From Octopus bimaculoides (lineage: Eukaryota), in the NCBI RefSeq assembly GCF_001194135.2, contig NC_068984.1, forward strand, positions 133,532,883 to 133,596,882: a stretch of 64,000 nt of DNA, given 5' to 3'. The first letter of the stretch is position 1. Each line of letters starts with the position of its first letter. Under the pieces are notes generated by a model. That model had not been told where the DNA came from and made no database searches. It was given only the letters and a program-made list of their open reading frames with translations. Positions 8,614 to 53,205 of the stretch are shown piece after piece. A program made the translations under genes and the position numbers.

Positions 8614-8656
8614 NNNNNNNNNNNNNNNNNNNNNNNNNNNNNNNNNNNNNNNNNNN
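8614..8656. other. Assembly gap cutting GCLC exon 15
   Basis: 43 N. Confidence 0.98.
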
Positions 8657-11017: not shown

Positions 11018-11320
11018 TAAAGAAGGATTTCGAACACACACAGTGAAAAATATTAAAAATTGCTACTGAAGAAGGATTTTAACTAAAAACATTAAAAATT
11101 CTGTTGAAGAAGGATTTGAACTATACACAGTAAAAAAAATATTCTAAAATCTTGAAGAAGGATTTCGAACACACGTAGTGAAAAATATTAAAAAATCCTG
11201 TTGAAGGATTCGAACTACATACAGTGAAAAATAGTAAAACTCCTGTTGAAGAAGGATTAGAACCACACGCAGTGGAAAATATTAAAAATCCTGTTGACGA
11301 AGGTTTCGAACACACGCAAG
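11018..11320. repeat. Degenerate ~48-bp tandem minisatellite (~6-7 units)
   Basis: Recurring GAAGAAGGATTTCGAACACAC.CAGTGAAAAATATTAAAAA.CCTGTT. Confidence 0.8.
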
Positions 11321-14170: not shown

Positions 14171-14954
14171 CTACAAAGAAAAAAAAAATGTATGTGATAT
14201 TTGAATACAAAATTATATGGTTTGAACTAGGAATTGAAATTACAACATGTGGATGGTTAAAAACTTTGCCACTCATTATTGTATTTGCATGAAAACAGAA
14301 AGCTAAATTACATTCAGTATTTAAGATTTTTCTGAGGAATTCTTGCTGATGGATTGAAACGTTACTTGTTTATCACTAATTTATTCATTACTTTTCAAGA
14401 ATAACACAGTACATGTCACACTTCTCATGAATTGATCTATCATAACATGGGTTGGCAATCAGTCAAAGATTCTACATGTTTTGATATTTTTTCAGTTTTT
14501 AAAATTTATTTATTGATCATATGTTATGAAATTTTAGTCTAAACATTTTCCAAATATGAAACAATATCATTATGTGTGTTTAAAATTGTTTAAAATAAAA
14601 ATGTCAATTGGGTAAGTTAAAGGAATAACTGGGGGGTTNNNNNNNNNNNNNNNNNNNNNNGGGGGGGGTCTTGCAACAAAAGCTATTTTCCCATATTTTC
14701 CCAAAAGCTATTTTCTATTATTCTTTTATCATTGATTCATTTAAAACAATGTTTATTTCTCTTTTTGTTTTGGAATCAATCACCCATGATAAGCAAGGGT
14801 AAATGTACTTCCCAGATTCTAGAAAAACTCACTTGAGAAAATCCACATAGTAACCGACCTAGCCAACTTACTCAACTATAATCTCCAATGTAATTAACTG
14901 GTCATCTAAGGTCCTCATAAACCAATGAAACAGCTACATACAAATGAAACTTAC

Positions 14955-15067
14955 CTCAAAATGGTCCGTATCAGTACTATCGTTCTGGTTAATCTTTTCT
15001 TCAAACAAGGAGATAGGATCTCGAATGAAGAGATGGGCAATATGCTGGGAGAGCAAATCATCAATAC
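14955..15067 (-). CDS. GCLC: GCLC exon 10 ((G)[37 protein letters not shown])
   Basis: gtcAG acceptor and GTAAGT donor. 113 nt, phase 1-0. [10 protein letters not shown] motif. Confidence 0.97.
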
Positions 15068-15949
15068 CTGACAAATATAATATTTTATTTTTCATTCACT
15101 TATTTGTGGTCCAGAAATTAAAACTCCAAAATACAATGTGGATTGACCACTTGACTGAGTTACACTAATTTGCTAGCTACTAAACAACCACAAGTTTCAG
15201 TTTGTTATAGATGGTACTATGCAATATCTATCAATAGAATGCATTTAACAAAGAACACACACACAAACATCAAACAATGGAAAAGCAATTATCAATTAGA
15301 AATCTGATATTGAATTTAGCGATTGACTTTGCATAGAATGTTCTGCTAAATCAGTGTTACATTAAAAAAATCTTCAAAATCTTATCCTTGAATCATTAGG
15401 AATCTCTATCTTTAGAGCTGATACCAGAACAATTACACAATAACAATGTTGGGATCACAGTAGTAAGAGTACCACAACACATCTGGTCAATTTAATCATA
15501 GTAGATTGTATATAGTCATATTTCACATGTGTATGTACATTCAGACATGGAAAGACAATTACACTGCACAAGTTATCTAAAGACAAGAAATTCTCCTTAT
15601 AGATAATATAGGTGTAAACATGCCTGTAGGCCATGAATGACATCACAAGCTCTTCCTGACAACAGGTTTTGCTCTTCAAAGTTGAGTTCCACTCTTCGTA
15701 GTTAATGATAGAAAAAGCACATATTTATAAAAATAAGTGTTCTAACAATACAATGTGCAAATGACTTACATTTGTCAAAACCATACAATACATTCTAATA
15801 TGGAAAAATACAAGAAAAACAGTTAAAGATTTTTACAGATATAACAACTCATGAAAATTTAAATGAAAAGTTGTAGTGATGGCTAAAAAAAAAAACAGCA
15901 CTTACGATTGAAATTTACAGCATAGATTGGAAAACTGCATAAGACATAC

Positions 15950-16088
15950 CTTCAGCCATTAACTCTTCATAAATCTCTTTGTCATACACCAACTGTAAAT
16001 CATTGTAGCAACGACCTTCTTCGGACAAGTAACTGTCGATGGAGTCATAGCGAGATTTATTGATCAAAAATCGATCATGTTTTAAAGG
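15950..16088 (-). CDS. GCLC: GCLC exon 9 (PLKHDRFLINKSRYDSIDSYLSEEGRCYNDLQLVYDKEIYEELMAE)
   Basis: ccttcAG acceptor and GTATGT donor. 139 nt, phase 0-1. KSRYDSIDSYL motif. Confidence 0.97.
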
Positions 16089-16399
16089 CTGAAGGAAAAA
16101 TTTCATGTTTGAGCAACAGAAGAGTAAAGAAAAAAAACAAAACAAATGAAATCAATAATTAGATCATTAAGCTGAACTCAGTGACATAAATTTTCCCTTC
16201 CATGATCACCAACTAGTAAGGATTTAGATATATCTTATAATCTTCTATATAAGTGACTAGACAAGAAAATCTTAACCCAAACAAATCTCTGTCACCTTAA
16301 ATGATGTGAAGAAACTGAGTTCAAGTTCTTAGATCTTAGAAAACATTTCTAATAAAGACTAAAATTATTTGAAAAGTTGATGTTTGAAAATATTCACAA

Positions 16400-17080
16400 G
16401 GTTGGACAACAGAATGATGGTTGAATAGTAGAAATCCAACCATCCACTTTCACTACTGACTATTCCTGGGTGGGTCATGAGGGTAAGGTCCTCAAGCAGA
16501 TCCTGCATAGGGTCCTATCAGAAGCAGCTATCATTAAACCTTCTTGCTAGATTTCCAAGCATGACCAGCTGAGACGATGAATATTTTCCAACCACCTCAC
16601 TCATAGATTACCCCTAGGTCTTCTGCCAGTTGGCTCAGCTTCAAGAATCTATCTTGTGATCCTTTTCTGTGGTATTCTAGCCACATGTCTGTAGTGCCGG
16701 AACTGTGACCTCTCAAATGCAGAGAAGTAGTGGTTCAACCTAGGGAGATTCTCTGATCCCCAATCTATGCAATCTGTCAAGAAATGTTACTCCAGAGATT
16801 CTTTGGAGGAACTTCTTTTCACAATCAGACTCTTTCAGTCATTGTCCAACATTTGTGGCCATAAATGAGGACAAGCAGCAAATTTGGCTTTTTCACTAAC
16901 AGTTCTTCTTCTAAGGATTAAATACTGAAGCTGGCACATCACTGTGCTAGCAACTGCAGTTCTAGCATCCAATTCAGCCTCCTACTTCCCATCATTCATG
17001 AATACATCTGCAGGATACTTAAACATCTCCACTTGACTCAGTGATGTTCCACTAACATGCACTGAGAGGATTTTCTTGAA
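16400..17080 (-). mobile_element. RTE-clade LINE 3' remnant
   Basis: Minus translation includes VEMFKY..AELDAR..AS.VM..and ERSQFRHYRHVARIPQKRITR*ILEAEPTGRRPRG...RWLENI, with stops and frameshifts. Confidence 0.7.
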
Positions 17081-17113
17081 AGGACCAATATCTCAGCCTT
17101 CACAACACTTAGT

Positions 17114-17343
17114 TTAACCCCTTCATTACTGTATTCATTTTGAGAGGCTCTGTGTTTCTTTCAATTAATTTTAAATATAACAAAGTATTTAGTAAAATAA
17201 CATAGTTATCATTAAGCTAGTGTTAGGAGCATAAATTGTGACTAAGGTTTGGTGGAAGATTTTAATTCAAAACTTACGAAAACAAGACATTTGTACTACA
17301 GAGCCAGAGGCGGTTTCAGCTGGGTTGATATCAAAAGGGTTAA
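17114..17343. mobile_element. piggyBac-type MITE
   Basis: TTAA-CCCTT ... AAGGG-TTAA termini. Confidence 0.7.
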
Positions 17344-17691
17344 AATAACTAAAAGATGAAATTTGAAGAGTTAGCAATGGTAGCAGCATTCTCTGTTATT
17401 CTTTTCGATTTAATAAATAACAATTCAGGTTAATCAAAACTTATAGAAATTTTTCTATTAAGTTTGTTGGATCAAGTTTTACAAAGACAGAGAGAGTTAC
17501 AAATATGAACATTTCTCTCTTATTACTAAGGTGACATGATTGCTTAAAAGAATAAAAGAGAGAGAAAACTCAACAACTATTCACTTCCATTGCTAACAAA
17601 GATTCTCAACCTTCTTATTTCATTCAAGAAATGTTTCCTTCCAAAAAAAAAAAAACTCATTCAATAACTCGGCTGGACAAAACAGACTTAC

Positions 17692-17808
17692 TTCTAAACC
17701 ACGTTCTTCCCTGGTGCGGTCATCAACTGATTGAACAATGACACTCCAACGACAGTCTGTGTCAGCTAAATAGCCACGGTAAATCGGAGCAGCTGCACTT
17801 AGTGCCAT
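17692..17808 (-). CDS. GCLC: GCLC exon 8 ([39 protein letters not shown])
   Basis: cacttcAG acceptor and GTAAGT donor. 117 nt. DCRW..I..SVDDRT motif. Confidence 0.97.
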
Positions 17809-18397
17809 CTGAAGTGTAAAAAAGGGGATTCTCAAGTTACTCAATATTCAGAGATTAACTAATTTTTAAAGAAAAGATTGATACAAAAAAAAAATAATAA
17901 TTAAAGAAAAAAATTAGCTAGAATTTTCCGAAATAGTTTGTGGCTGTCATTTTGCCATGTTAAACAGAAGTGTAATAAGTCATCTGTGAAGAAAGCAATT
18001 GATTTTAAACAAGAAAATAGAGCTGATCTAAAATGTGAATCTTAATAGAGAGGAAAGATATATTATTTTAAAGACTAATGAAATGCTATCAAATATATAC
18101 AGAGAAAAGGAATAGAATATTTTCAAACATAGACCATACAAAGATCTATAGTACTAAACTATATATACAGTACAATGGTGAAGAATACAAACTAATATAC
18201 CCTATACAAATTATTAAAAAAAAAAAATATATACAGTACAGTACTGTTTCAACTTTGTGGATTTTCACCTATCGTGGGGTGTTATGGAATGTAACACCCA
18301 TGATAGTCGAGGGATTACTGTATACTGGAAGCAGATTGGATGACAATAATCCACATGGAGTTCTAAACAACAGTAGTAGCAGTTGTACATCTTTTTT

Positions 18398-18599
18398 ACA
18401 CACAGGGGTGCTGAAAAGTTCCTGGCTTTGAGTAAAAGAAATACAGGAGGATCAGTTAATTATGATTTTATTCAACATGTTTTCCTCTCAGATTCACACA
18501 CTTGTTGCAGCGATCCTTCAGCTTTTCTAAGTCCTGCAAAAGAACTCGGTTGGGCCTTACCAACCAGGTCTTTCGCAATACCCTTAAAGCCAGGAACTT
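18398..18599. mobile_element. Mariner-type MITE, right end truncated by (TG)n
   Basis: TA-CACAGGGGTGCTGAAAAGTTCCTGGCTTT at the left and its inverted portion AAAGCCAGGAACTT at the right. Confidence 0.6.
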
Positions 18600-19616
18600 G
18601 TGTGTGTGTGTGTGTGTGTGTGTCAGTGAAATACTGCTCAACCTACATTGATATAAAAGGATGTAGAAGGGACAAAGGTGTAGAATATTCAATCACTAAG
18701 ATTTCATAAAAGAAAAAAAAAAAAAATCAAGATTAACAAAGCAAAAAAAAATAAAATCAAGAAAACAAGTAAACAGAAATATTTCCCTCAATTGAAAACA
18801 TTAGTAAATGTTTTAAAATAAAGTGTTTCACAAACAAAAATCTGACAAAGTATAATACTACACAATATTGTTTTCCATACGAAAACAGAGAAAATAAATA
18901 AAATAAATCATAAAAGTGTGTGTGTGTGTGCATGTATGCAGAAGAAGTAATAAAAATAACAAAAAAAGACAAAAATTTAAAAGTCTTAGACTATCTCTCT
19001 TCCCTCAACCCTCCTCTCTTCCTTCTGCTTCATGTTTAACACAACTGTTGTGATACTAAGAACATGAGAATTCAAAAAACTCAAAGCATGTTTGGTTAAC
19101 GTTATTTTCCTTTCCAAATGAAACAAGACATTGAGTAAGATTTTGTCTTTCAAACAATAGACCCTATGTATAACTCCCCACTTTCTCTCTCCCCTACCAT
19201 TCACCAACCGTCAATGGTGGTGGTGGCGGCAGTGGGGAAGATTTTTATTTTATTTATTATTTTTTTTTTTTTTGCCCTTTCTCACTTTTACACGATGGCT
19301 CCAGAGGCTTTGCTCAGCGACAATGTTCAGTTTGGAATATAAAATAAATAACCCAAAACTAACAGACCAGTTCATTGCCCAGTACAAGGACAAGCAAAGG
19401 GAGGCGAACTTAAAATGAATAAATACTTTTATTTACATTAGTTTCTCTCCTTCCCCACACGAAAAATAAATAAATACACGTCTATTTACTCCACATTCAA
19501 ACAAACGTCTCTATTTGTTTCAATTTCCATGGAATATATTGATGATATATCCAGTCTTTTGTCTTTCACAATTTCTTTTTTCATTTTTTTTTAAAAAAAA
19601 AGAGTGATCTGTCGCA

Positions 19617-19650
19617 TATAAATGGTGAGAATTACCCTGCCAAGTATCAG
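19617..19650 (+). promoter_or_regulatory. Putative TATA box and initiator of the nested collagen-C1q gene
   Basis: TATAAA at 19617-19622 and TCAG initiator-like motif at 19647-19650, ~30 nt downstream. An in-frame first exon follows. Confidence 0.5.
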
Positions 19651-19702
19651 AACTGGATATAGGTGCACAAAGTGACGATTGTTAATTCATCTCTGGACTT
19701 AT

Positions 19703-19734
19703 ATGGCAGGGAAAATTTCTCACCCACTCGTCAG
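19703..19734 (+). CDS. Nested collagen-C1q gene, predicted coding exon 1 (MAGKISHPLV(R))
   Basis: ATG at 19703 and donor CAG|GTAATA at 19735. The phase-2 end splices in frame to the acceptor at 21014 (AG|G AAG TGG ATG). Confidence 0.55.
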
Positions 19735-19790
19735 GTAATAACTCAAGTGATTTTTTATACAATGCACTATAGCATACATACATTGCTCTT

Positions 19791-19822
<32 letters not shown>

Positions 19823-21014
19823 ATGCACACACATACATACACACACTTTTTGAACTTATTAAGATAACAAGGCAGTCACTTTAAGCTGAAGATAACACCA
19901 TCATATTTCAAATACATTCTAGTAAGAATCATAAACCAGGGTGAATGCAGGTTAAATTTATTTTTAAAAAAATAAATAAATAATAATAATAATAATAATA
20001 ATAATGTTGAAATTATTGTGTATAGTGCTCAGGTGCACTACAACTCATCAAAGGTGCATGTACATAGAATTATGTACAAAAGTTAGGAAAGTGAACAGTG
20101 GGTCAGATAGAATTTGCTGAGGTAGATTTTCTATGGCTGGCTGTCATTCCTGTCAAAAACCCTCACCTGGTTCCAAGTAAGGTAATGTTTCCTCAAAAAC
20201 CAGACATGTTTTTACTGGAAGACTAGAAATGAATGACATCACTTGTATGACAGTCAAATGCATATGTGTGTGCACATGTGTGTGTGAGTGTATCGCCTTT
20301 TCTTGATATCATACAATGATTGTAAACAATTTTATGGAAGCAAAAATTAAACAAATCATGAGACAAAAGACTTGCTAAAAGCCACAACAGCTCAAATGCT
20401 TTATAAATACATTATATTTGAAAAATATTTTGACAATGCTCAAAGAAAATGTACTGCTAATGAGTCACGTGTCTAACTTGTGCTATGGCCAAGCTCTCTA
20501 TAATAGCAACTGTCAATAAAATAAAAGATTCATAATTGTGAAGAGGTGTTAACATCATATAAGTGGTGTCCTTCATTTCCAATCTTCCATGAAAACATGT
20601 CTGGCCAACCCTCACCTGTTTCCAAGAAAGGTAATATTTCCCATGACCAGAGATGTTTTCATGAAAGACTGGATATGACACTCATTTACAACTATTAGGC
20701 AATGTCCAGACAAGGAGGCCATAACACACACACACACACATGATGGACTTCTTCCAGTTCCTGCCAACCAAATTCACTTGCAAAGCTTTAGTTGGCCTGG
20801 GGCTATAGAAGAAGACACTTGCCCAAAGTGCCACACAGTGGAACTGAACTCAAAGCCATGTGGTTGAGAAGTAAACTTCTTACCACATTTGCACTTTAGC
20901 TACACAAGTGCCTCAGAAATGTTAACAGCAGACATTATATGATAAACGCATTGATTAATCCATATATGATAATAATTATCATTGTTAGAGTTAATGAAAT
21001 TATTCACCTTTCAG

Positions 21015-21691
21015 GAAGTGGATGAAAATGTACCTGATGAAGATGCCAGTTCAGGTAACAAGTTATGTTTCTCTAAATTGTGGTCATCTACACTCGACTG
21101 GATGTTTAATTATCTTGAATTCCTTGCTATTGTTGTCTAGTCTTCAGCCAGCAGCAGGTATTGTCTTTGAGAAAAGTAACTTTACAAACTCTCCAAACAA
21201 CACCGTAGAAACCGAGAACAGAACTGCTGGAACGAGGTTTTACTTCAACCAAACAAATAGTAAGGAAAATATTTCATCGACAAAAATGAAACTCCCTTAT
21301 CAAGATAAAGATAACGAAGTAAATTATTCTACTTCAAATATCAGAATTAAAAATAGAGAGACATTAGATACAACTAATAGGGCTCAAAATTTGCCATTTA
21401 CTGAGAAGGATGGTTTGAACAAGATTCTAAGACAGCACAATACAAGGAACACGCATCAACCCAAAGCAAGAAATGAAGAGATTGTTATGGACAACTTGAA
21501 TGCAATGCCAAATAATTTGAGCATTATTGTTGAGACAACCAGCTATAAAATAAAGCTTCCATCAGCAACAGATACAGCACTATCTCCAACTGCACCACCA
21601 GTGTCTAAATATTCAGCAGAGATGTGTCAGCCGAACACATCAACCCCAATGAATCTGACGGTGAATGTGGCTTCTGCAACGGCTGCGAGTG
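21015..21691 (+). CDS. Nested collagen-C1q gene, exon 2: signal-peptide-like segment and N-glycosylated Ser/Thr/Asn-rich stalk
   Basis: Acceptor cacctttcAG at 21014 and donor G|GTAAGT at 21692, phase 1. 677-nt open frame. Hydrophobic GCLIILNSLLLLSSLQPAAG. Nine N-x-S/T sequons. Confidence 0.85.
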
Positions 21692-23672
21692 GTAAGTCAA
21701 CTTCATTGCCGTCATTCTTATTTTATGTCAATAAAGTTTCACTTTGAACAAAATTCAACAAAAGGCCATGCAGCACATCATTTTTTGAATCCTCACTCCA
21801 ATAACTATTACTGGATATGTATTTACATGTGTGTGTTTGTGCATCAATACATATACACACGCACACATCAACATTTAATGACAACTTTTCCATGCTTGCA
21901 TGGGTCAGCTGGAATTAGTTGAGGCAGATATTTCTCTATGGCAAAACATGTTTTTCATGGAAGACAGGAAACAAGCAGTGCCTCTTTTATAACAGACAGT
22001 GATGCTCGTTATAATCATTACATGATATCAAGACAAGAGTAAACACACACACACACACAAAGCACCTTTCAGTTTTTGTCTTCCAAATCTATTCACAAGA
22101 CTTTGGTTGGCCCAGGACTATAGCAGAAGACATTTACCCAAGATGATGTGCACTGGGACTGAACGCAAGACAACATTGTTATGAAGCAACCTTCTTAACT
22201 ACACAGCCATGCCTGTACTTATATATATATATATATTTATATATAGAGTGTTCTTAGGTTGGGAAATTTTATATATTGGGATACAGAGGTGACAAATGTA
22301 TTCAATTTCTGGGATGGAATGGTTAACTACTTCAGATCCAAACTTCCTTCAAGAATATTCTGAAAATTATTGTGGCCTTTTGTCAGGCTGCAAAAATTAT
22401 GCCAGATGAACCAGAATTTTTCAAAACAACTGATATGTCTGTCTTCAAATCATCTACGTAAGAAATTTGATGTTGAATATATATATAATTTAGTGTGTGT
22501 ATGCACACACTAAATATATATACAACGGAGTTGTTCTGGATTGTTAGACAAGGAGTTATCTCCCTTGTCATTTGTTTCATTGAGATACATTAGGTGCTTG
22601 CGCACACAATTTCATGACTGCATAGATATACATTCTCTCTTTCTCTCTCTCTCTCTCTCTCACACACACTCATAGGTACATGCTCTCTTGCACTTACACA
22701 CGCATTCGTTCATTTCAATAAATATGACCCCTCATTACGTATTTAAGTATTTTCAGCAACAAGAGAGAAAACAAACTTTGTAAGAAGTATTAATATTTGC
22801 AATTTGAATATTGGACACATTGCCTGCACCAGAAGAAGAGAGATGAGTGTTTAGAGCATAGGCACATGATTAGAGTGAATAAACATGTACCAGTAGATGG
22901 TAGCTTTCGTAGATATAAATCAATGAAATTTTGGAGTGTGACAGTCAGATGAGACATTTATACATAAAGTTTAGTTTGTCAAGCTAAACTTTCATGTTAA
23001 ATGTCAAAGCATAAAATTGAATCAACATTTACATTTGAAATTGTACTCTCTTCCTTTAGCTCATGCTGATATTTCCCATCAAGCCACACCTCCACATCTG
23101 TTCACCACTCACTACACTCACCTCTACTTCCATCTCTAACCATTTGTTACTCTCTCCTCACATACTTATAATCTCCCCCCCCCCTTTGTTCCATTGTCCA
23201 TATCCTCTCTTATGCTCATCTCCTAGTTCCCTGAGGGTTTGTCTAGGCACCCCCTCCATCACTACCAGCTTATTTTCTCCTCAGCTATACCCACACACCT
23301 TTATATAATGTGGGGTAGCCACATATCTTCTTTATAGCAAGACATCTGCATTTGTCCCTCTGTCATAATTTAACTTCACTACACTTGGTATAAAGTTATC
23401 TCCCTCTTAGCTAAGGGGGCTTTTTCTTTTTTCTAGTTTTTTCTCTGTCTTGCAAGTTACTTGGTGACTTTACAAGTGCTGGTGGCATAAGAAAAGCATC
23501 TTAACATAGAAAAGCAGAGAACTTCTCTAGAATCACATGTGTGTATATTCAAAGTATCTCATGAAATTATATCTTTATGTTTTGACAAAAAGCAAGATCT
23601 ATGTTTTGAAAACACATGAGATGTCTGAATTAAATTTTCTAAAATATTAATAGATTTATTTTTATTATTCAG

Positions 23673-24271
23673 GTCCTCCAGGCCCTAAAGGATCTCCAGG
23701 TGTTCCTGGTAGAAAAGGAGAGCCAGGTAGACCAGGGCCTATGGGCCCCAAAGGTAGTGAAGGAGACAGAGGCTATACTGGAATGAAAGGTGCAGTAGGG
23801 AAAACTGGAAAACAAGGACTGAAAGGAGAGAAAGGTGAAAGAGGCATGTCAGGTCGGCCTCAATCACAAGCAGCTACGTCAGCCATACTCACCAAACATT
23901 TTGGTCCAGCAGAAGAGGTTATTGTTCCTTTTAACTTGGTCCTTATTGATTCAGGTGACAACTATGACAACAATACAGGTGTTTATATTTGCACGATACC
24001 AGGCATTTATGTAATGTCAGTGTATGTGATGTCTCATCCAGGTTCCATTATCAATGGCAGGATCTACATCAACAACCGGCCTGTCGCAGCCCTCTGGACA
24101 GATGACAATAAAAAGGCAGGTTTCTATCCATCAACAAGTATTCAGATAATCAGTAGATTGGAGTTTGGTGATCAAGTATATATCAAACTTGTTAGTGGAT
24201 ATGGTAAAAGCTGGGTGCATGCAAATTATAATGCTTTTTCCATATTTCTTTTGTATGAAGACATTTTCTAA
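23673..24271 (+). CDS. Nested collagen-C1q gene, exon 3: 21 Gly-X-Y triplets and C-terminal gC1q domain (C1qTNF/otolin-like)
   Basis: Acceptor tttattattcAG at 23672, phase 1, matching exon 2. GPP-GPK-GSP...GRP repeat. C1q motifs [27 protein letters not shown] and FSIFLLY. TAA at 24269-24271. Confidence 0.95.
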
Positions 24272-24385
24272 ATAACCAAAGCTGGATTTACATTTACCAT
24301 TTGGACTCGTTGTTCAATATAAAACAATACCAGAATGTGTCCTTTTTTTTGTAGTAGATATAGTGACTATTGCCACTGCTTCATA

Positions 24386-24391
24386 AATAAA
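24386..24391 (+). terminator. PolyA signal of the nested collagen-C1q gene
   Basis: AATAAA 115 nt after the stop codon. Confidence 0.55.
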
Positions 24392-25352
24392 ATAGTTTAA
24401 ATACTAAATTTCTTGAAATTAAACTATGAAAACACCACCACTAGTATTTGTGGTTACTTACCATTCTTATCTCATCTCTAATTGTTCTTTTCATAAATAG
24501 CTTCATAGAAGAATACATTAAAAGACATTGTTCATAAAATGTCTCCTTGCTATATATTCACAGATGCAAGTTAGTGTATATAAATATCACAATTTTCATT
24601 GTTTCATAAGTAATAATCTAAACTCCATTAATACAGGTCCAAGAAAACTGGTGTTTTGAACATAGTGCAGGTATGACCACATGGTGAAGAATTTCATTTT
24701 GCAATGGTGTGATTGCTGGTTCAATCCTTCTGCTGGGCACCTTACACAAGTATCTGCTATCATAGCTTCATGTTGTACAAAACCTTCTAACAAAATTGAG
24801 AAGACAGACACTATGTATAAGCTGATCAGAGGGTCTGTTAGATATCTGTTCTTAGGTGGTGGATTGAATGCATTCACTGGCTTAATACAACCACATGGCC
24901 CTTGAAAGCTTTCAGCAGGGTCCACTCTGTTGAAAGCATTTGAATAAGGTCTTTCGTCTGAGGACAACTCAGTACTTGATGCACTGTTTTCTGCTGCAGA
25001 AACAGACAAGTTGTGGTTTTATCTTCTTTTTCCCCCAACAAGTAATAGAGGCTTTGCAAAAGGTTGAGTAAGGACTCTTTAAATAAGCCATAGAAAAATT
25101 AAAACTTTTCCCTATTCTATCATGACAACCCTATTAGCATACTCTTGTCTCTATTCACACCAAAAAAAGGAGAGACACATTTTTCAAAGGAAATGAACCA
25201 TTGTTATGCTAATTCCAGCAGCTTAATTTATAAGAGAGATTCCTGTTCTTTCAATAATGATACCATTATCAATCTATTATATCATATATCACCAAACAAG
25301 ACAAAGTATTTCAACAACAGTTAGAATAAACATACATATTTATTATAATGTA

Positions 25353-25908
25353 TTAGGGGTACCGAAAAGTAATATTGCATTTTCGAGCAAATAGCCAGAT
25401 ATTATACCAAAAGAGGATCCGCAGCAATATACAGGGACTTTCAGAGATTTATCTAATAAACCTTGGTCCATAGTGCAGGATCATCTCAAGTAGATTGTGA
25501 AAATCTATAAAGAAGGGAAGAAGGTACCCAATGAGCTGTCCCTTGAAAATAAAGGCCATATTCAGTGAAGATAACCTAAGAAAAGATAAATTCATTAGGC
25601 TGGGAAACTCTACTTCACCCTTCCTATTTACTGGACCCAGCACCATCAGATTTTCACTTATTCAGGTCACTTGAGCACTTTACCTATGGAAAAACATTCA
25701 GAAGCAGGAATAATCTCAAAACAATACTCCAAACATTTTTTCTCTTCTAAAGAACCTAATTTTCAGGCCTGAGGAATCAGAAAACTGGTTTCGAAGTGAG
25801 AAAATGTTATTGCTCATCATGGTGATTATATTTTGAATGAACAAATATATTTACTAAATGTTTTGAACTTATTACATGAAATGCAACATTACTTTTTGGT
25901 ACCCCTAA
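25353..25908 (+). mobile_element. Mariner deletion derivative with intact TIRs and TA TSD
   Basis: TA-TTAGGGGTACCGAAAAGTAATATTGCATTT ... GAAATGCAACATTACTTTTTGGTACCCCTAA-TA. Internal remnant LGWETLLHP..DPAPSDFHLFRSLEH..FFSSKEPNF..GIRKL. Confidence 0.9.
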
Positions 25909-25933
25909 TATATAATATATAAATGGTTCTTAC

Positions 25934-26151
25934 CATAATTGGACAGACAGGTGCCAGATGGTCATAAAGAAGTCGAGCTTCACCAATATTACACGCCTGG
26001 AATGTAAGTTGTAAACAGCAACAGCCCATTCCAAAACCCATAGCATCCATATATATATGGTCTGGTTTGGCTGCATTTTGTGACTCACCATTGTCTCCAT
26101 ATATGGATAAATCTTCCAGGAATGGAGACATGGTATTCTTATCTTTAAAAA
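25934..26151 (-). CDS. GCLC: GCLC exon 7 ((I)[14 protein letters not shown]...[45 protein letters not shown])
   Basis: ggtttcAG acceptor and GTAAGA donor. 218 nt, phase 1-0. Active-site motif [16 protein letters not shown]. Confidence 0.97.
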
Positions 26152-26728
26152 CTGAAACCAGACAAAGAAAAAGCTATACAAACATAACAAAAAACACATA
26201 AGTATTATGAAATACTGGTTTCATCTGACAAATTAATTTAACTTATTGGTAATGTTTTTAGTAAATGATGCCAACACTTCAATCACCCACAGTATCTTTG
26301 TATCATCAGATATCTTTCTTTTATTTTTTATCGTCTACCATCTTATTTTGCTCAGATTTTACCACAGAGAGAGCAGCTGATATTTTACATTCAATTTTTA
26401 ATCAAGTATATCCCTTATCACTTATTTCTGTTTGGCATTTACATATTTCACTTGCTCTGCTCCAGCAATATTTCATTGTCACATACTAGTGGCCTGAAAA
26501 ACCATAATAAACAAGCCTCGTTCTGTAGAGAGAACAAAACATCTTCCAACAATTACAAAAATACAATTGATCATTACTTTCACTGCTAGCTCCACTACTT
26601 ACAATGATTAGCAGCTGAGCTGCTAAACATGACAGAAACAACCAGCTACATACATCTCCTGTAAGGGCTTATTAATTATACTAGCAGAAAGACCGACCTC
26701 CAGGTGGTTTTCTGCTTGTCAAACCTGG

Positions 26729-53078: not shown

Positions 53079-53205
53079 AGATCGGAAGAGCNNNNNNNNN
53101 NNNNNNNNNNNNNNNNNNNNNNNNNNNNNNNNNNNNNNNNNNNNNNNNNNNNNNNNNNNNNNNNNNNNNNNNNNNNNNNNNNNNNNNNNNNNNNNNNNNN
53201 NNNNN
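53079..53205. other. Illumina adapter remnant followed by an assembly gap
   Basis: AGATCGGAAGAGC at 53079-53091 directly abuts 114 N (53092-53205). Confidence 0.92.

Follow-up and report, generated by a model that had tools for sequence, protein, structure and literature searches.

An antisense collagen-C1q gene within a GCLC intron of Octopus bimaculoides and the probable retention of this nesting among molluscs

The stretch of Octopus bimaculoides DNA analyzed here (64,000 nucleotides of chromosome CM046604.1, around 133.5 Mb, 36% G+C; hereafter the window, to whose numbering all positions refer) carries one protein-coding gene within another. The host is GCLC, a housekeeping gene of glutathione synthesis read from the minus strand. 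The guest, or nested gene, lies on the plus strand and encodes a protein with a collagen stalk and a C1q head. An earlier reading made from the nucleotide letters alone (the sequence-only reading) had proposed a three-exon model for the guest, join(19703-19734, 21015-21691, 23673-24271), and re-translation bore it out in full: 1308 nt encode 435 amino acids (aa), no stop codon interrupts the frame and the splice phases match. Exon 1 (19662-19734) comprises an RNA-supported 5' untranslated region (UTR, 19662-19702) and the first coding segment (19703-19734, MAGKISHPLVR). Intron 1 (19735-21014, phase 2) is followed by exon 2 (21015-21691), which encodes a signal-like hydrophobic core, a fast-evolving region with predicted N-glycosylation and a conserved cysteine motif. 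Intron 2 (21692-23672, phase 1) splits the glycine codon that opens the collagen stalk, and the coding part of exon 3 (23673-24271) contributes 21 G-X-Y triplets, the globular C1q domain and the stop codon TAA. Both introns are of the GT..AG type, with donors CAG/gtaat and GTG/gtaag and the acceptor ttcag/G in each case. At the base composition of the window, an open frame of 241 codons like that of exon 2 would occur by chance about 0.0035 times per window; therefore exon 2 is not a chance open reading frame (ORF). The TATA box (TATAAAT, 19617-19623) and the polyadenylation signal (AATAAA, 24386-24391) named by the sequence-only reading are both present on the plus strand. The former is a putative promoter element; the latter closes a 3'UTR (24272-24391) read from the sequence.

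RNA data from the source species cover both splice junctions. In a 2015 run from Octopus bimaculoides (X7), a 391-nt contig is composed of 19662-19735 (contig positions 1-74) and 21011-21332, and a 634-nt contig is composed of 21313-21690 and 23672-23927. Four to five nucleotides, tcag(g), are common to both sides of the contig alignment at the borders of intron 1. Since the contigs span each of them, the junctions 19734/21015 and 21691/23673, which had been proposed as a check on the model, are both used in RNA, with GT..AG on the plus strand. A 917-nt contig from a closely related species (X1) joins 21476-21690 to 23672-24374 and ends 12 nt before AATAAA. In contigs from another related species (X2), the alignment begins precisely at 21011 and at 23672, after a 5' tail that does not align, which is what spliced mRNA would produce; these contigs extend 3' to 24361. 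The mRNA of the nested gene thus reaches from 19662 to at least 24374 and has its own splicing, distinct from that of the host pre-mRNA. The 391-nt X7 contig begins 45 nt downstream of the TATA box, and transcription may start a few nucleotides 5' of 19662. The first AUG observed in this mRNA is at 19703, with an in-frame TGA upstream at 19673.

The whole nested gene lies within an 8125-bp intron of GCLC on the minus strand (17809-25933), and the GCLC reads reproduced exactly the location that had been read from the sequence. Seventy reads of one run (X20) run off 17809 into sequence identical to 25935-25964, as do contigs of X7, X14 and X39. On this basis the intron was set at 17809-25933, with GT..AG on the minus strand. 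Further GCLC reads join 15063 to 15946 and 16088 to 17692. The two minus-strand exons flanking the host intron both match the Pfam family GCS. The upstream exon (25934-26158; tblastn E 1e-43) encodes aa 206-280, ends in CPIM and corresponds to profile positions 1-42, its 5' border being approximate. The downstream exon (17692-17808), defined by an RNA joint and by tblastn, encodes aa 281-319, starts with MALSAA and corresponds to profile positions 39-81.

The other GCLC exons were mapped in the window using the Octopus sinensis GCLC protein as a tblastn query. Upstream of the host intron, all on the minus strand, they lie at 47701-47594 (aa 51-86), 43300-43181 (aa 88-127), 36541 to about 36470 (aa 126-149), 30462-30343 (aa 149-188) and 28557-28513 (aa 193-207); downstream of aa 281-319, eight further exons on the same strand extend down to 3521. 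Neither a motif search nor a sensitive tblastn search found the first coding exon (aa 1-50) in the window. In Patella and Pomacea these residues form a single exon. Thus the earlier designation of the host intron as intron 7 is right by homology, the upstream coding exons visible in the window being six (aa 51-280). A piece of GCLC covering aa 547-567 was also not found in the window. The local O. bimaculoides GCLC model is probably incomplete, since it is annotated as 628 aa, compared with 649 aa in O. sinensis and Argonauta. The window contains three assembly gaps (runs of N at 8614-8656, 14639-14660 and 53092-53205). Altogether, the nested gene is an independent three-exon gene with its own putative TATA promoter, on the strand opposite to GCLC and inside the seventh coding intron of that gene.

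Several segments of the GCLC introns (17054-17374, 19784-19849, 20606-20913, 21768-22299 and 22512-22761) showed very high RNA depth. Their contigs, at depths between hundreds and hundreds of thousands, contain numerous chimeric joints and carry CA/CT microsatellite tails. Such segments represent multi-copy repeats, either microsatellites or resembling short interspersed elements (SINE-like), that are transcribed from other parts of the genome and belong to neither gene. A repeat search found no long repeats inside the host intron. Another GCLC intron contains, at 49748-49901 on the minus strand, a 154-nt match to eukaryotic large-subunit rRNA (Rfam RF02543, 96 bits, model positions 2833-2984). 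This fragment probably belongs to a repeat or entered as an insertion that derives from rRNA.

The nested gene itself is not new. Its 435-aa product is identical over its full length to RefSeq XP_014785497.1, named "adiponectin [Octopus bimaculoides]" (UniProt A0A0L8G0J1), and the O. sinensis counterpart (XP_036357705.1) is also 435 aa long. The sequence-only reading had expected the exons to be easily annotated separately; RefSeq already joins them into the identical model, and the only split or partial versions are ORFs called on short contigs (P0003, P0217) and certain orthologue models elsewhere.

From the N-terminus, the protein displays a hydrophobic core at aa 40-54 (GCLIILNSLLLLSSL) followed by QPAAG, and then a region rich in Asn, Thr and Ser, with nine N-x-S/T sequons within aa 66-226. 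The collagen stalk consists of 21 uninterrupted G-X-Y triplets (aa 237-299, 63 residues; Pfam Collagen at aa 238-294, E 6e-10) immediately before the globular head. This head matches Pfam C1q (PF00386) at aa 306-429 with E 2e-15 and 57.5 bits, for a cut-off of 23.7, covering positions 3-126 of the 127 in the profile. A single cysteine precedes the stalk, Cys215, within the motif C-x-P-N-x-S-x-P-M-N-L-T-V. The motif (window 21644-21691; columns 1-22 of alignment A1) carries two sequons. Octopus, Argonauta and the chiton have it in almost the same form, whereas no such motif was seen in the proteins of Haliotis, Patella and Batillaria.

Conservation differs strongly between these regions. Between Octopus and Argonauta, 24% of the residues are identical in aa 1-59, 39% in aa 60-214, 91% in aa 215-236, 73% in the stalk and 82% in the C1q domain. 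The ratio of nonsynonymous to synonymous substitution rates (dN/dS) in the same comparison, where dS is near saturation, falls from about 0.45 in the N-terminal region to about 0.09 in the C1q head, indicating that the head is under purifying selection. An AlphaFold2 model built from a 6-sequence alignment was all-beta, with a mean pLDDT (predicted local distance difference test) of 44, and was not used for fold search. Taken together, the hydrophobic signal-like segment, the predicted glycosylated region, the collagen stalk and the conserved C1q head suggest a protein of the secretory type. By analogy with all characterized collagen-C1q proteins, it would assemble into trimers by means of its C1q head and its triple helix. 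Larger bundles may arise from such trimers by linkage through Cys215, and the C1q head should bind an extracellular partner.

The name given to XP_014785497.1 raises the question of whether the protein is the molluscan counterpart of adiponectin, a circulating metabolic hormone acting through AdipoR-type receptors. Its layout does resemble that of adiponectin, with a variable region, about 21 G-X-Y triplets and a gC1q domain. Moreover, adiponectin-like C1q proteins have been proposed in gastropods and cephalopods by a study on Lymnaea, which defines a cephalopod and gastropod "adiponectin group 1" (PMC10045044). However, when solved structures were searched, where 37 gC1q chains matched at E<=1e-3, C1QL3 (52.7 bits, E 4e-13) ranked above collagen VIII (48.9 bits) and collagen X (46.9 bits), and C1QL1 and 2, caprin-2 and C1qC also scored above adiponectin/Acrp30 (38.9 bits). 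The best vertebrate database matches were otolin-1 and CTRP9, with 26-37% identity and scores helped by collagen repeats. With identity of at most about 37%, the protein appears to have no one-to-one vertebrate orthologue. Since adiponectin ranks below C1QL3, collagens VIII and X and others, the searches do not support the name "adiponectin", an automatic label. The O. sinensis accession listed in the Lymnaea study differs from that of the nested gene, and orthology of the Lymnaea "adiponectin" to the nested gene is therefore unproven. The Lymnaea protein is also only 264 aa long, compared with 1,735-2,078 aa for the heterobranch orthologues of the nested gene. We consider it very unlikely that the nested gene encodes a molluscan adiponectin.

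The ranking of otolin-1 among the best-scoring vertebrate relatives points to another function, that of an otolin-like scaffold in the matrix of statoliths or statoconia of the balance organ. Yet these scores are inflated by the collagen repeats, at an identity of about 35%. The octopus stalk has 63 collagen residues with the single Cys215 before it; the otolin-1 taken for comparison (P0010, 471 aa), by contrast, contains the sequence CCDCC, and its collagen region is long. The distribution of the gene does not fit either: it is present in a chiton and absent from the bivalves examined. Chitons have no statocysts, and bivalves do have them, so this taxon pattern is at odds with the distribution of statocysts and weakens the otolin reading. 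The literature searches brought up no description of an otolin-like protein from the statocysts of molluscs. A role as a statolith scaffold thus carries very little probability.

Orthologues of this protein were sought by two profile searches, one of them exhaustive. The profile containing the stalk drew long collagens, and only matches to the C1q part were used. Members of the orthologue group reached 156 bits or more, while generic C1q proteins did not exceed 123 bits. Orthologues from named taxa came only from cephalopods, gastropods and one chiton; several short unnamed members could not be placed. The contigs encoding orthologues were then taken, and GCLC exons were mapped on them by motifs allowing mismatches and then by tblastn. 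The same nesting was found in seven species from three classes: the cephalopods Octopus bimaculoides and Argonauta hians, the gastropods Haliotis asinina, Patella caerulea, Pomacea canaliculata and Batillaria attramentaria, and the chiton Liolophura sinensis (Polyplacophora). In all seven, the C1q gene is antisense to GCLC and sits in the same intron, between the exon ending in CPI(M/L) and the exon beginning with (M/L)ALSAA. The host intron measures 7.3-11.8 kb in these species. The comparison with other molluscs suggested by the sequence-only reading thus revealed the same nested gene in another octopod, in four gastropods and in a chiton. Disabling mutations in orthologues, which would have spoken against a functional gene, did not appear either, no frameshift being seen in the 7 species. 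Stalk and head are 62-82% identical across the classes. In Argonauta, an intron has the same position and phase as intron 2 of the octopus gene, and in Haliotis a phase-1 intron lies just before the collagen stretch.

Comparison of these loci also exposes annotation errors. The GCLC gene of Patella is uncalled (L004), though its exons flank the nested gene. In Batillaria, the GCLC model is truncated: it ends short of the nested gene and omits exons that are present upstream (L006, 1-9033 and 15660-17133). The guest model is partial in Liolophura (L005) and probably in Biomphalaria. The Batillaria contig further contains, downstream of the nested gene, a second C1q-like fragment of 32 aa on the plus strand (L006, 12765-12860), 56% identical to the end of the head, which is possibly the remnant of a duplicated exon.

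Nesting shared by distant classes could be convergent. C1q genes are numerous and mobile in molluscs, and different members might have been inserted independently into the same GCLC intron. However, the nested genes are mutual best matches at 62-82% identity, compared with about 30% to other C1q proteins. They all have the same orientation, and the phase-1 intron just before the stalk is common to Octopus, Argonauta and Haliotis, the species examined for it. These features leave convergence with a negligible probability. In the established phylogeny, chitons branch outside the group formed by cephalopods, gastropods and bivalves. Since an orthologue occupies the same intron in a chiton, in octopods and in four gastropod lineages, sequence comparison indicates that the nested pair most likely goes back to the last ancestor shared by all living molluscs. 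The guest would then have been lost in bivalves and relocated, with expansion of its N-terminal part, in heterobranch snails.

The relocation can be followed in Physella acuta. An extra intron interrupts the head of its 2056-aa orthologue (L010, 10001-17685), whose neighbors are an Arf-like GTPase gene on one side and a further gene on the other; GCLC exons are missing from the vicinity. The orthologous intron of Physella GCLC is empty and only 0.76 kb long. In the exon before this empty intron, the first 22 codons are present in four tandem copies (L011 11171-11705; copies at 11171, 11269, 11366 and 11463), a local tandem duplication beside the vacated nest. Orthologues in Physella, Bulinus, Biomphalaria pfeifferi, two Elysia species and Plakobranchus (P0219-P0222, P0230, P0198) are all 1,735-2,078 aa long with the C1q head at the very end; thus their N-terminal region has expanded four- to five-fold, to about 1,800 aa. 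In the bivalves Mactra and Solemya, the orthologous GCLC intron (1.2 and 6.0 kb, respectively) contains no C1q sequence, and neither does that of the brachiopod Lingula (0.36 kb). In Mactra antiquata GCLC (L007, 21684-22911), an additional intron of about 1 kb divides the exon encoding aa 204-284, which is single in the other species.

The persistence of the pair might reflect selection on the nesting itself. Head-on transcription could dampen GCLC or the reverse, or the two genes could share regulatory DNA, resulting in mutually exclusive expression. The sequence-only reading had considered transcriptional interference or tissue-exclusive expression plausible. Such coupling would agree with the retention of intron and orientation in 7 species of 3 classes, and with the silence of the nested gene in three runs in which GCLC is well expressed (X20-22, about 6% of each sampled). 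However, GCLC is spliced and abundant in every run examined (X7, X14, X39 and X20), and mRNA of the nested gene is also found in one of them, X7. These are bulk samples, with which exclusive expression of guest and host in single cells would still be compatible. Moreover, Physella moved the guest out, and the two bivalves and Lingula have none; all keep the same GCLC intron. Since Physella relocated the gene and bivalves lack it, the coupling is not obligate. Persistence alone does not prove coupling either, because long-lived nested pairs are known in other animals (PMC3933685, PMC3240667). We therefore regard selection for head-on or shared regulation as unlikely.

Retention is best explained as passive, rather than as the outcome of obligate regulatory coupling. 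To get out of an intron of an essential gene, a guest depends on breaks that do no harm to the host. Two such breaks within one intron are needed to remove it, which makes passive retention the most economical explanation. Loss or departure of the guest had no visible consequence for the structure of the GCLC gene. A more far-reaching proposal is that the C1q gene and GCLC have formed a selected regulatory unit since the first molluscs, the protein being tied to structures that bivalves lost. Control elements of the guest could, for example, lie within GCLC, or glutathione synthesis in the few cell types secreting the protein could be adjusted by antisense transcription. The protein would then be a mollusc-specific extracellular component tied to the radula and buccal apparatus, and bivalves would lack the gene because these structures were lost with the head. 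We give this proposal a small chance of being right. The explanation that we favor as a whole combines an independent C1q gene of secretory type, an ancient nesting and mostly passive retention, and is very probably correct.

Several observations weigh against this explanation. Expression of the nested gene is low and patchy: the depth of the X7 contigs is about 4, and no reads fell on the nested exons in the sampled fraction of the deep 2026 RNA runs X20-22. If ATG 19703 is used, the signal-like core starts only at residue 40. This ATG stands in a weak Kozak context, and exon 2 offers four further in-frame AUGs. The Argonauta orthologue starts about 27 residues before a cleavage-like site; like the Haliotis orthologue, it has a signal-like N-terminus of the ordinary kind. 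As regards history, the ancestral nesting assumes that chitons lie outside the group of cephalopods, gastropods and bivalves, and the GCLC loci compared come from octopods, gastropods, bivalves, one chiton and a brachiopod. Finally, passive and selected retention are not distinguishable with the present data.

If the favored explanation holds, the guest has probably stayed for over 500 million years in one intron of a housekeeping gene, in chitons and cephalopods as well as in most gastropods. The clean escape in Physella and the clean absences in two bivalves and Lingula make the locus a compact natural experiment in which passive constraint can be set against shared regulation. It could also serve as a rare-genomic-change marker for molluscan phylogeny, scorable in scaphopods, monoplacophorans and aplacophorans. 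Lastly, the analysis flags a conserved, mollusc-restricted C1q protein that carries a misleading database name.

At the level of the protein, the closest known systems are the C1q/TNF proteins with a short stalk (C1QL1-4, CTRPs, adiponectin, otolin-1 and the NC1 domains of collagens VIII and X). Like the nested protein, they combine a variable N-terminus, a G-X-Y stretch and a C-terminal gC1q domain; unlike them, the octopus protein has a long, Asn/Thr/Ser-rich and poorly conserved N-terminal region. The expanded, fast-evolving, immune lectin-like C1q-domain-containing (C1qDC) proteins of bivalves share the same domain. In contrast to these families, the nested gene is present as one conserved orthologue per species examined, with the low dN/dS of the head given above. 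Literature searches found no paper on the C1q/GCLC nested pair or on the nested position. To our knowledge, the deep conservation of this position across molluscan classes is undescribed; it is an instance of a known phenomenon. TIMP inside synapsin is one such nested pair. Two others have been conserved over long periods: in one, LRRTM genes lie within introns of alpha-catenin (PMC3933685), and in the other, an insect intron contains the TipE cluster (PMC3240667). There too, a coding gene has stayed for hundreds of millions of years on the opposite strand of an orthologous intron of an unrelated host, and, as in the C1q/GCLC pair, lineage-specific loss or escape has occurred. The molluscan pair differs from them in its genes and in its phylum, with a housekeeping metabolic enzyme as the host and a predicted secreted C1q protein as the guest.

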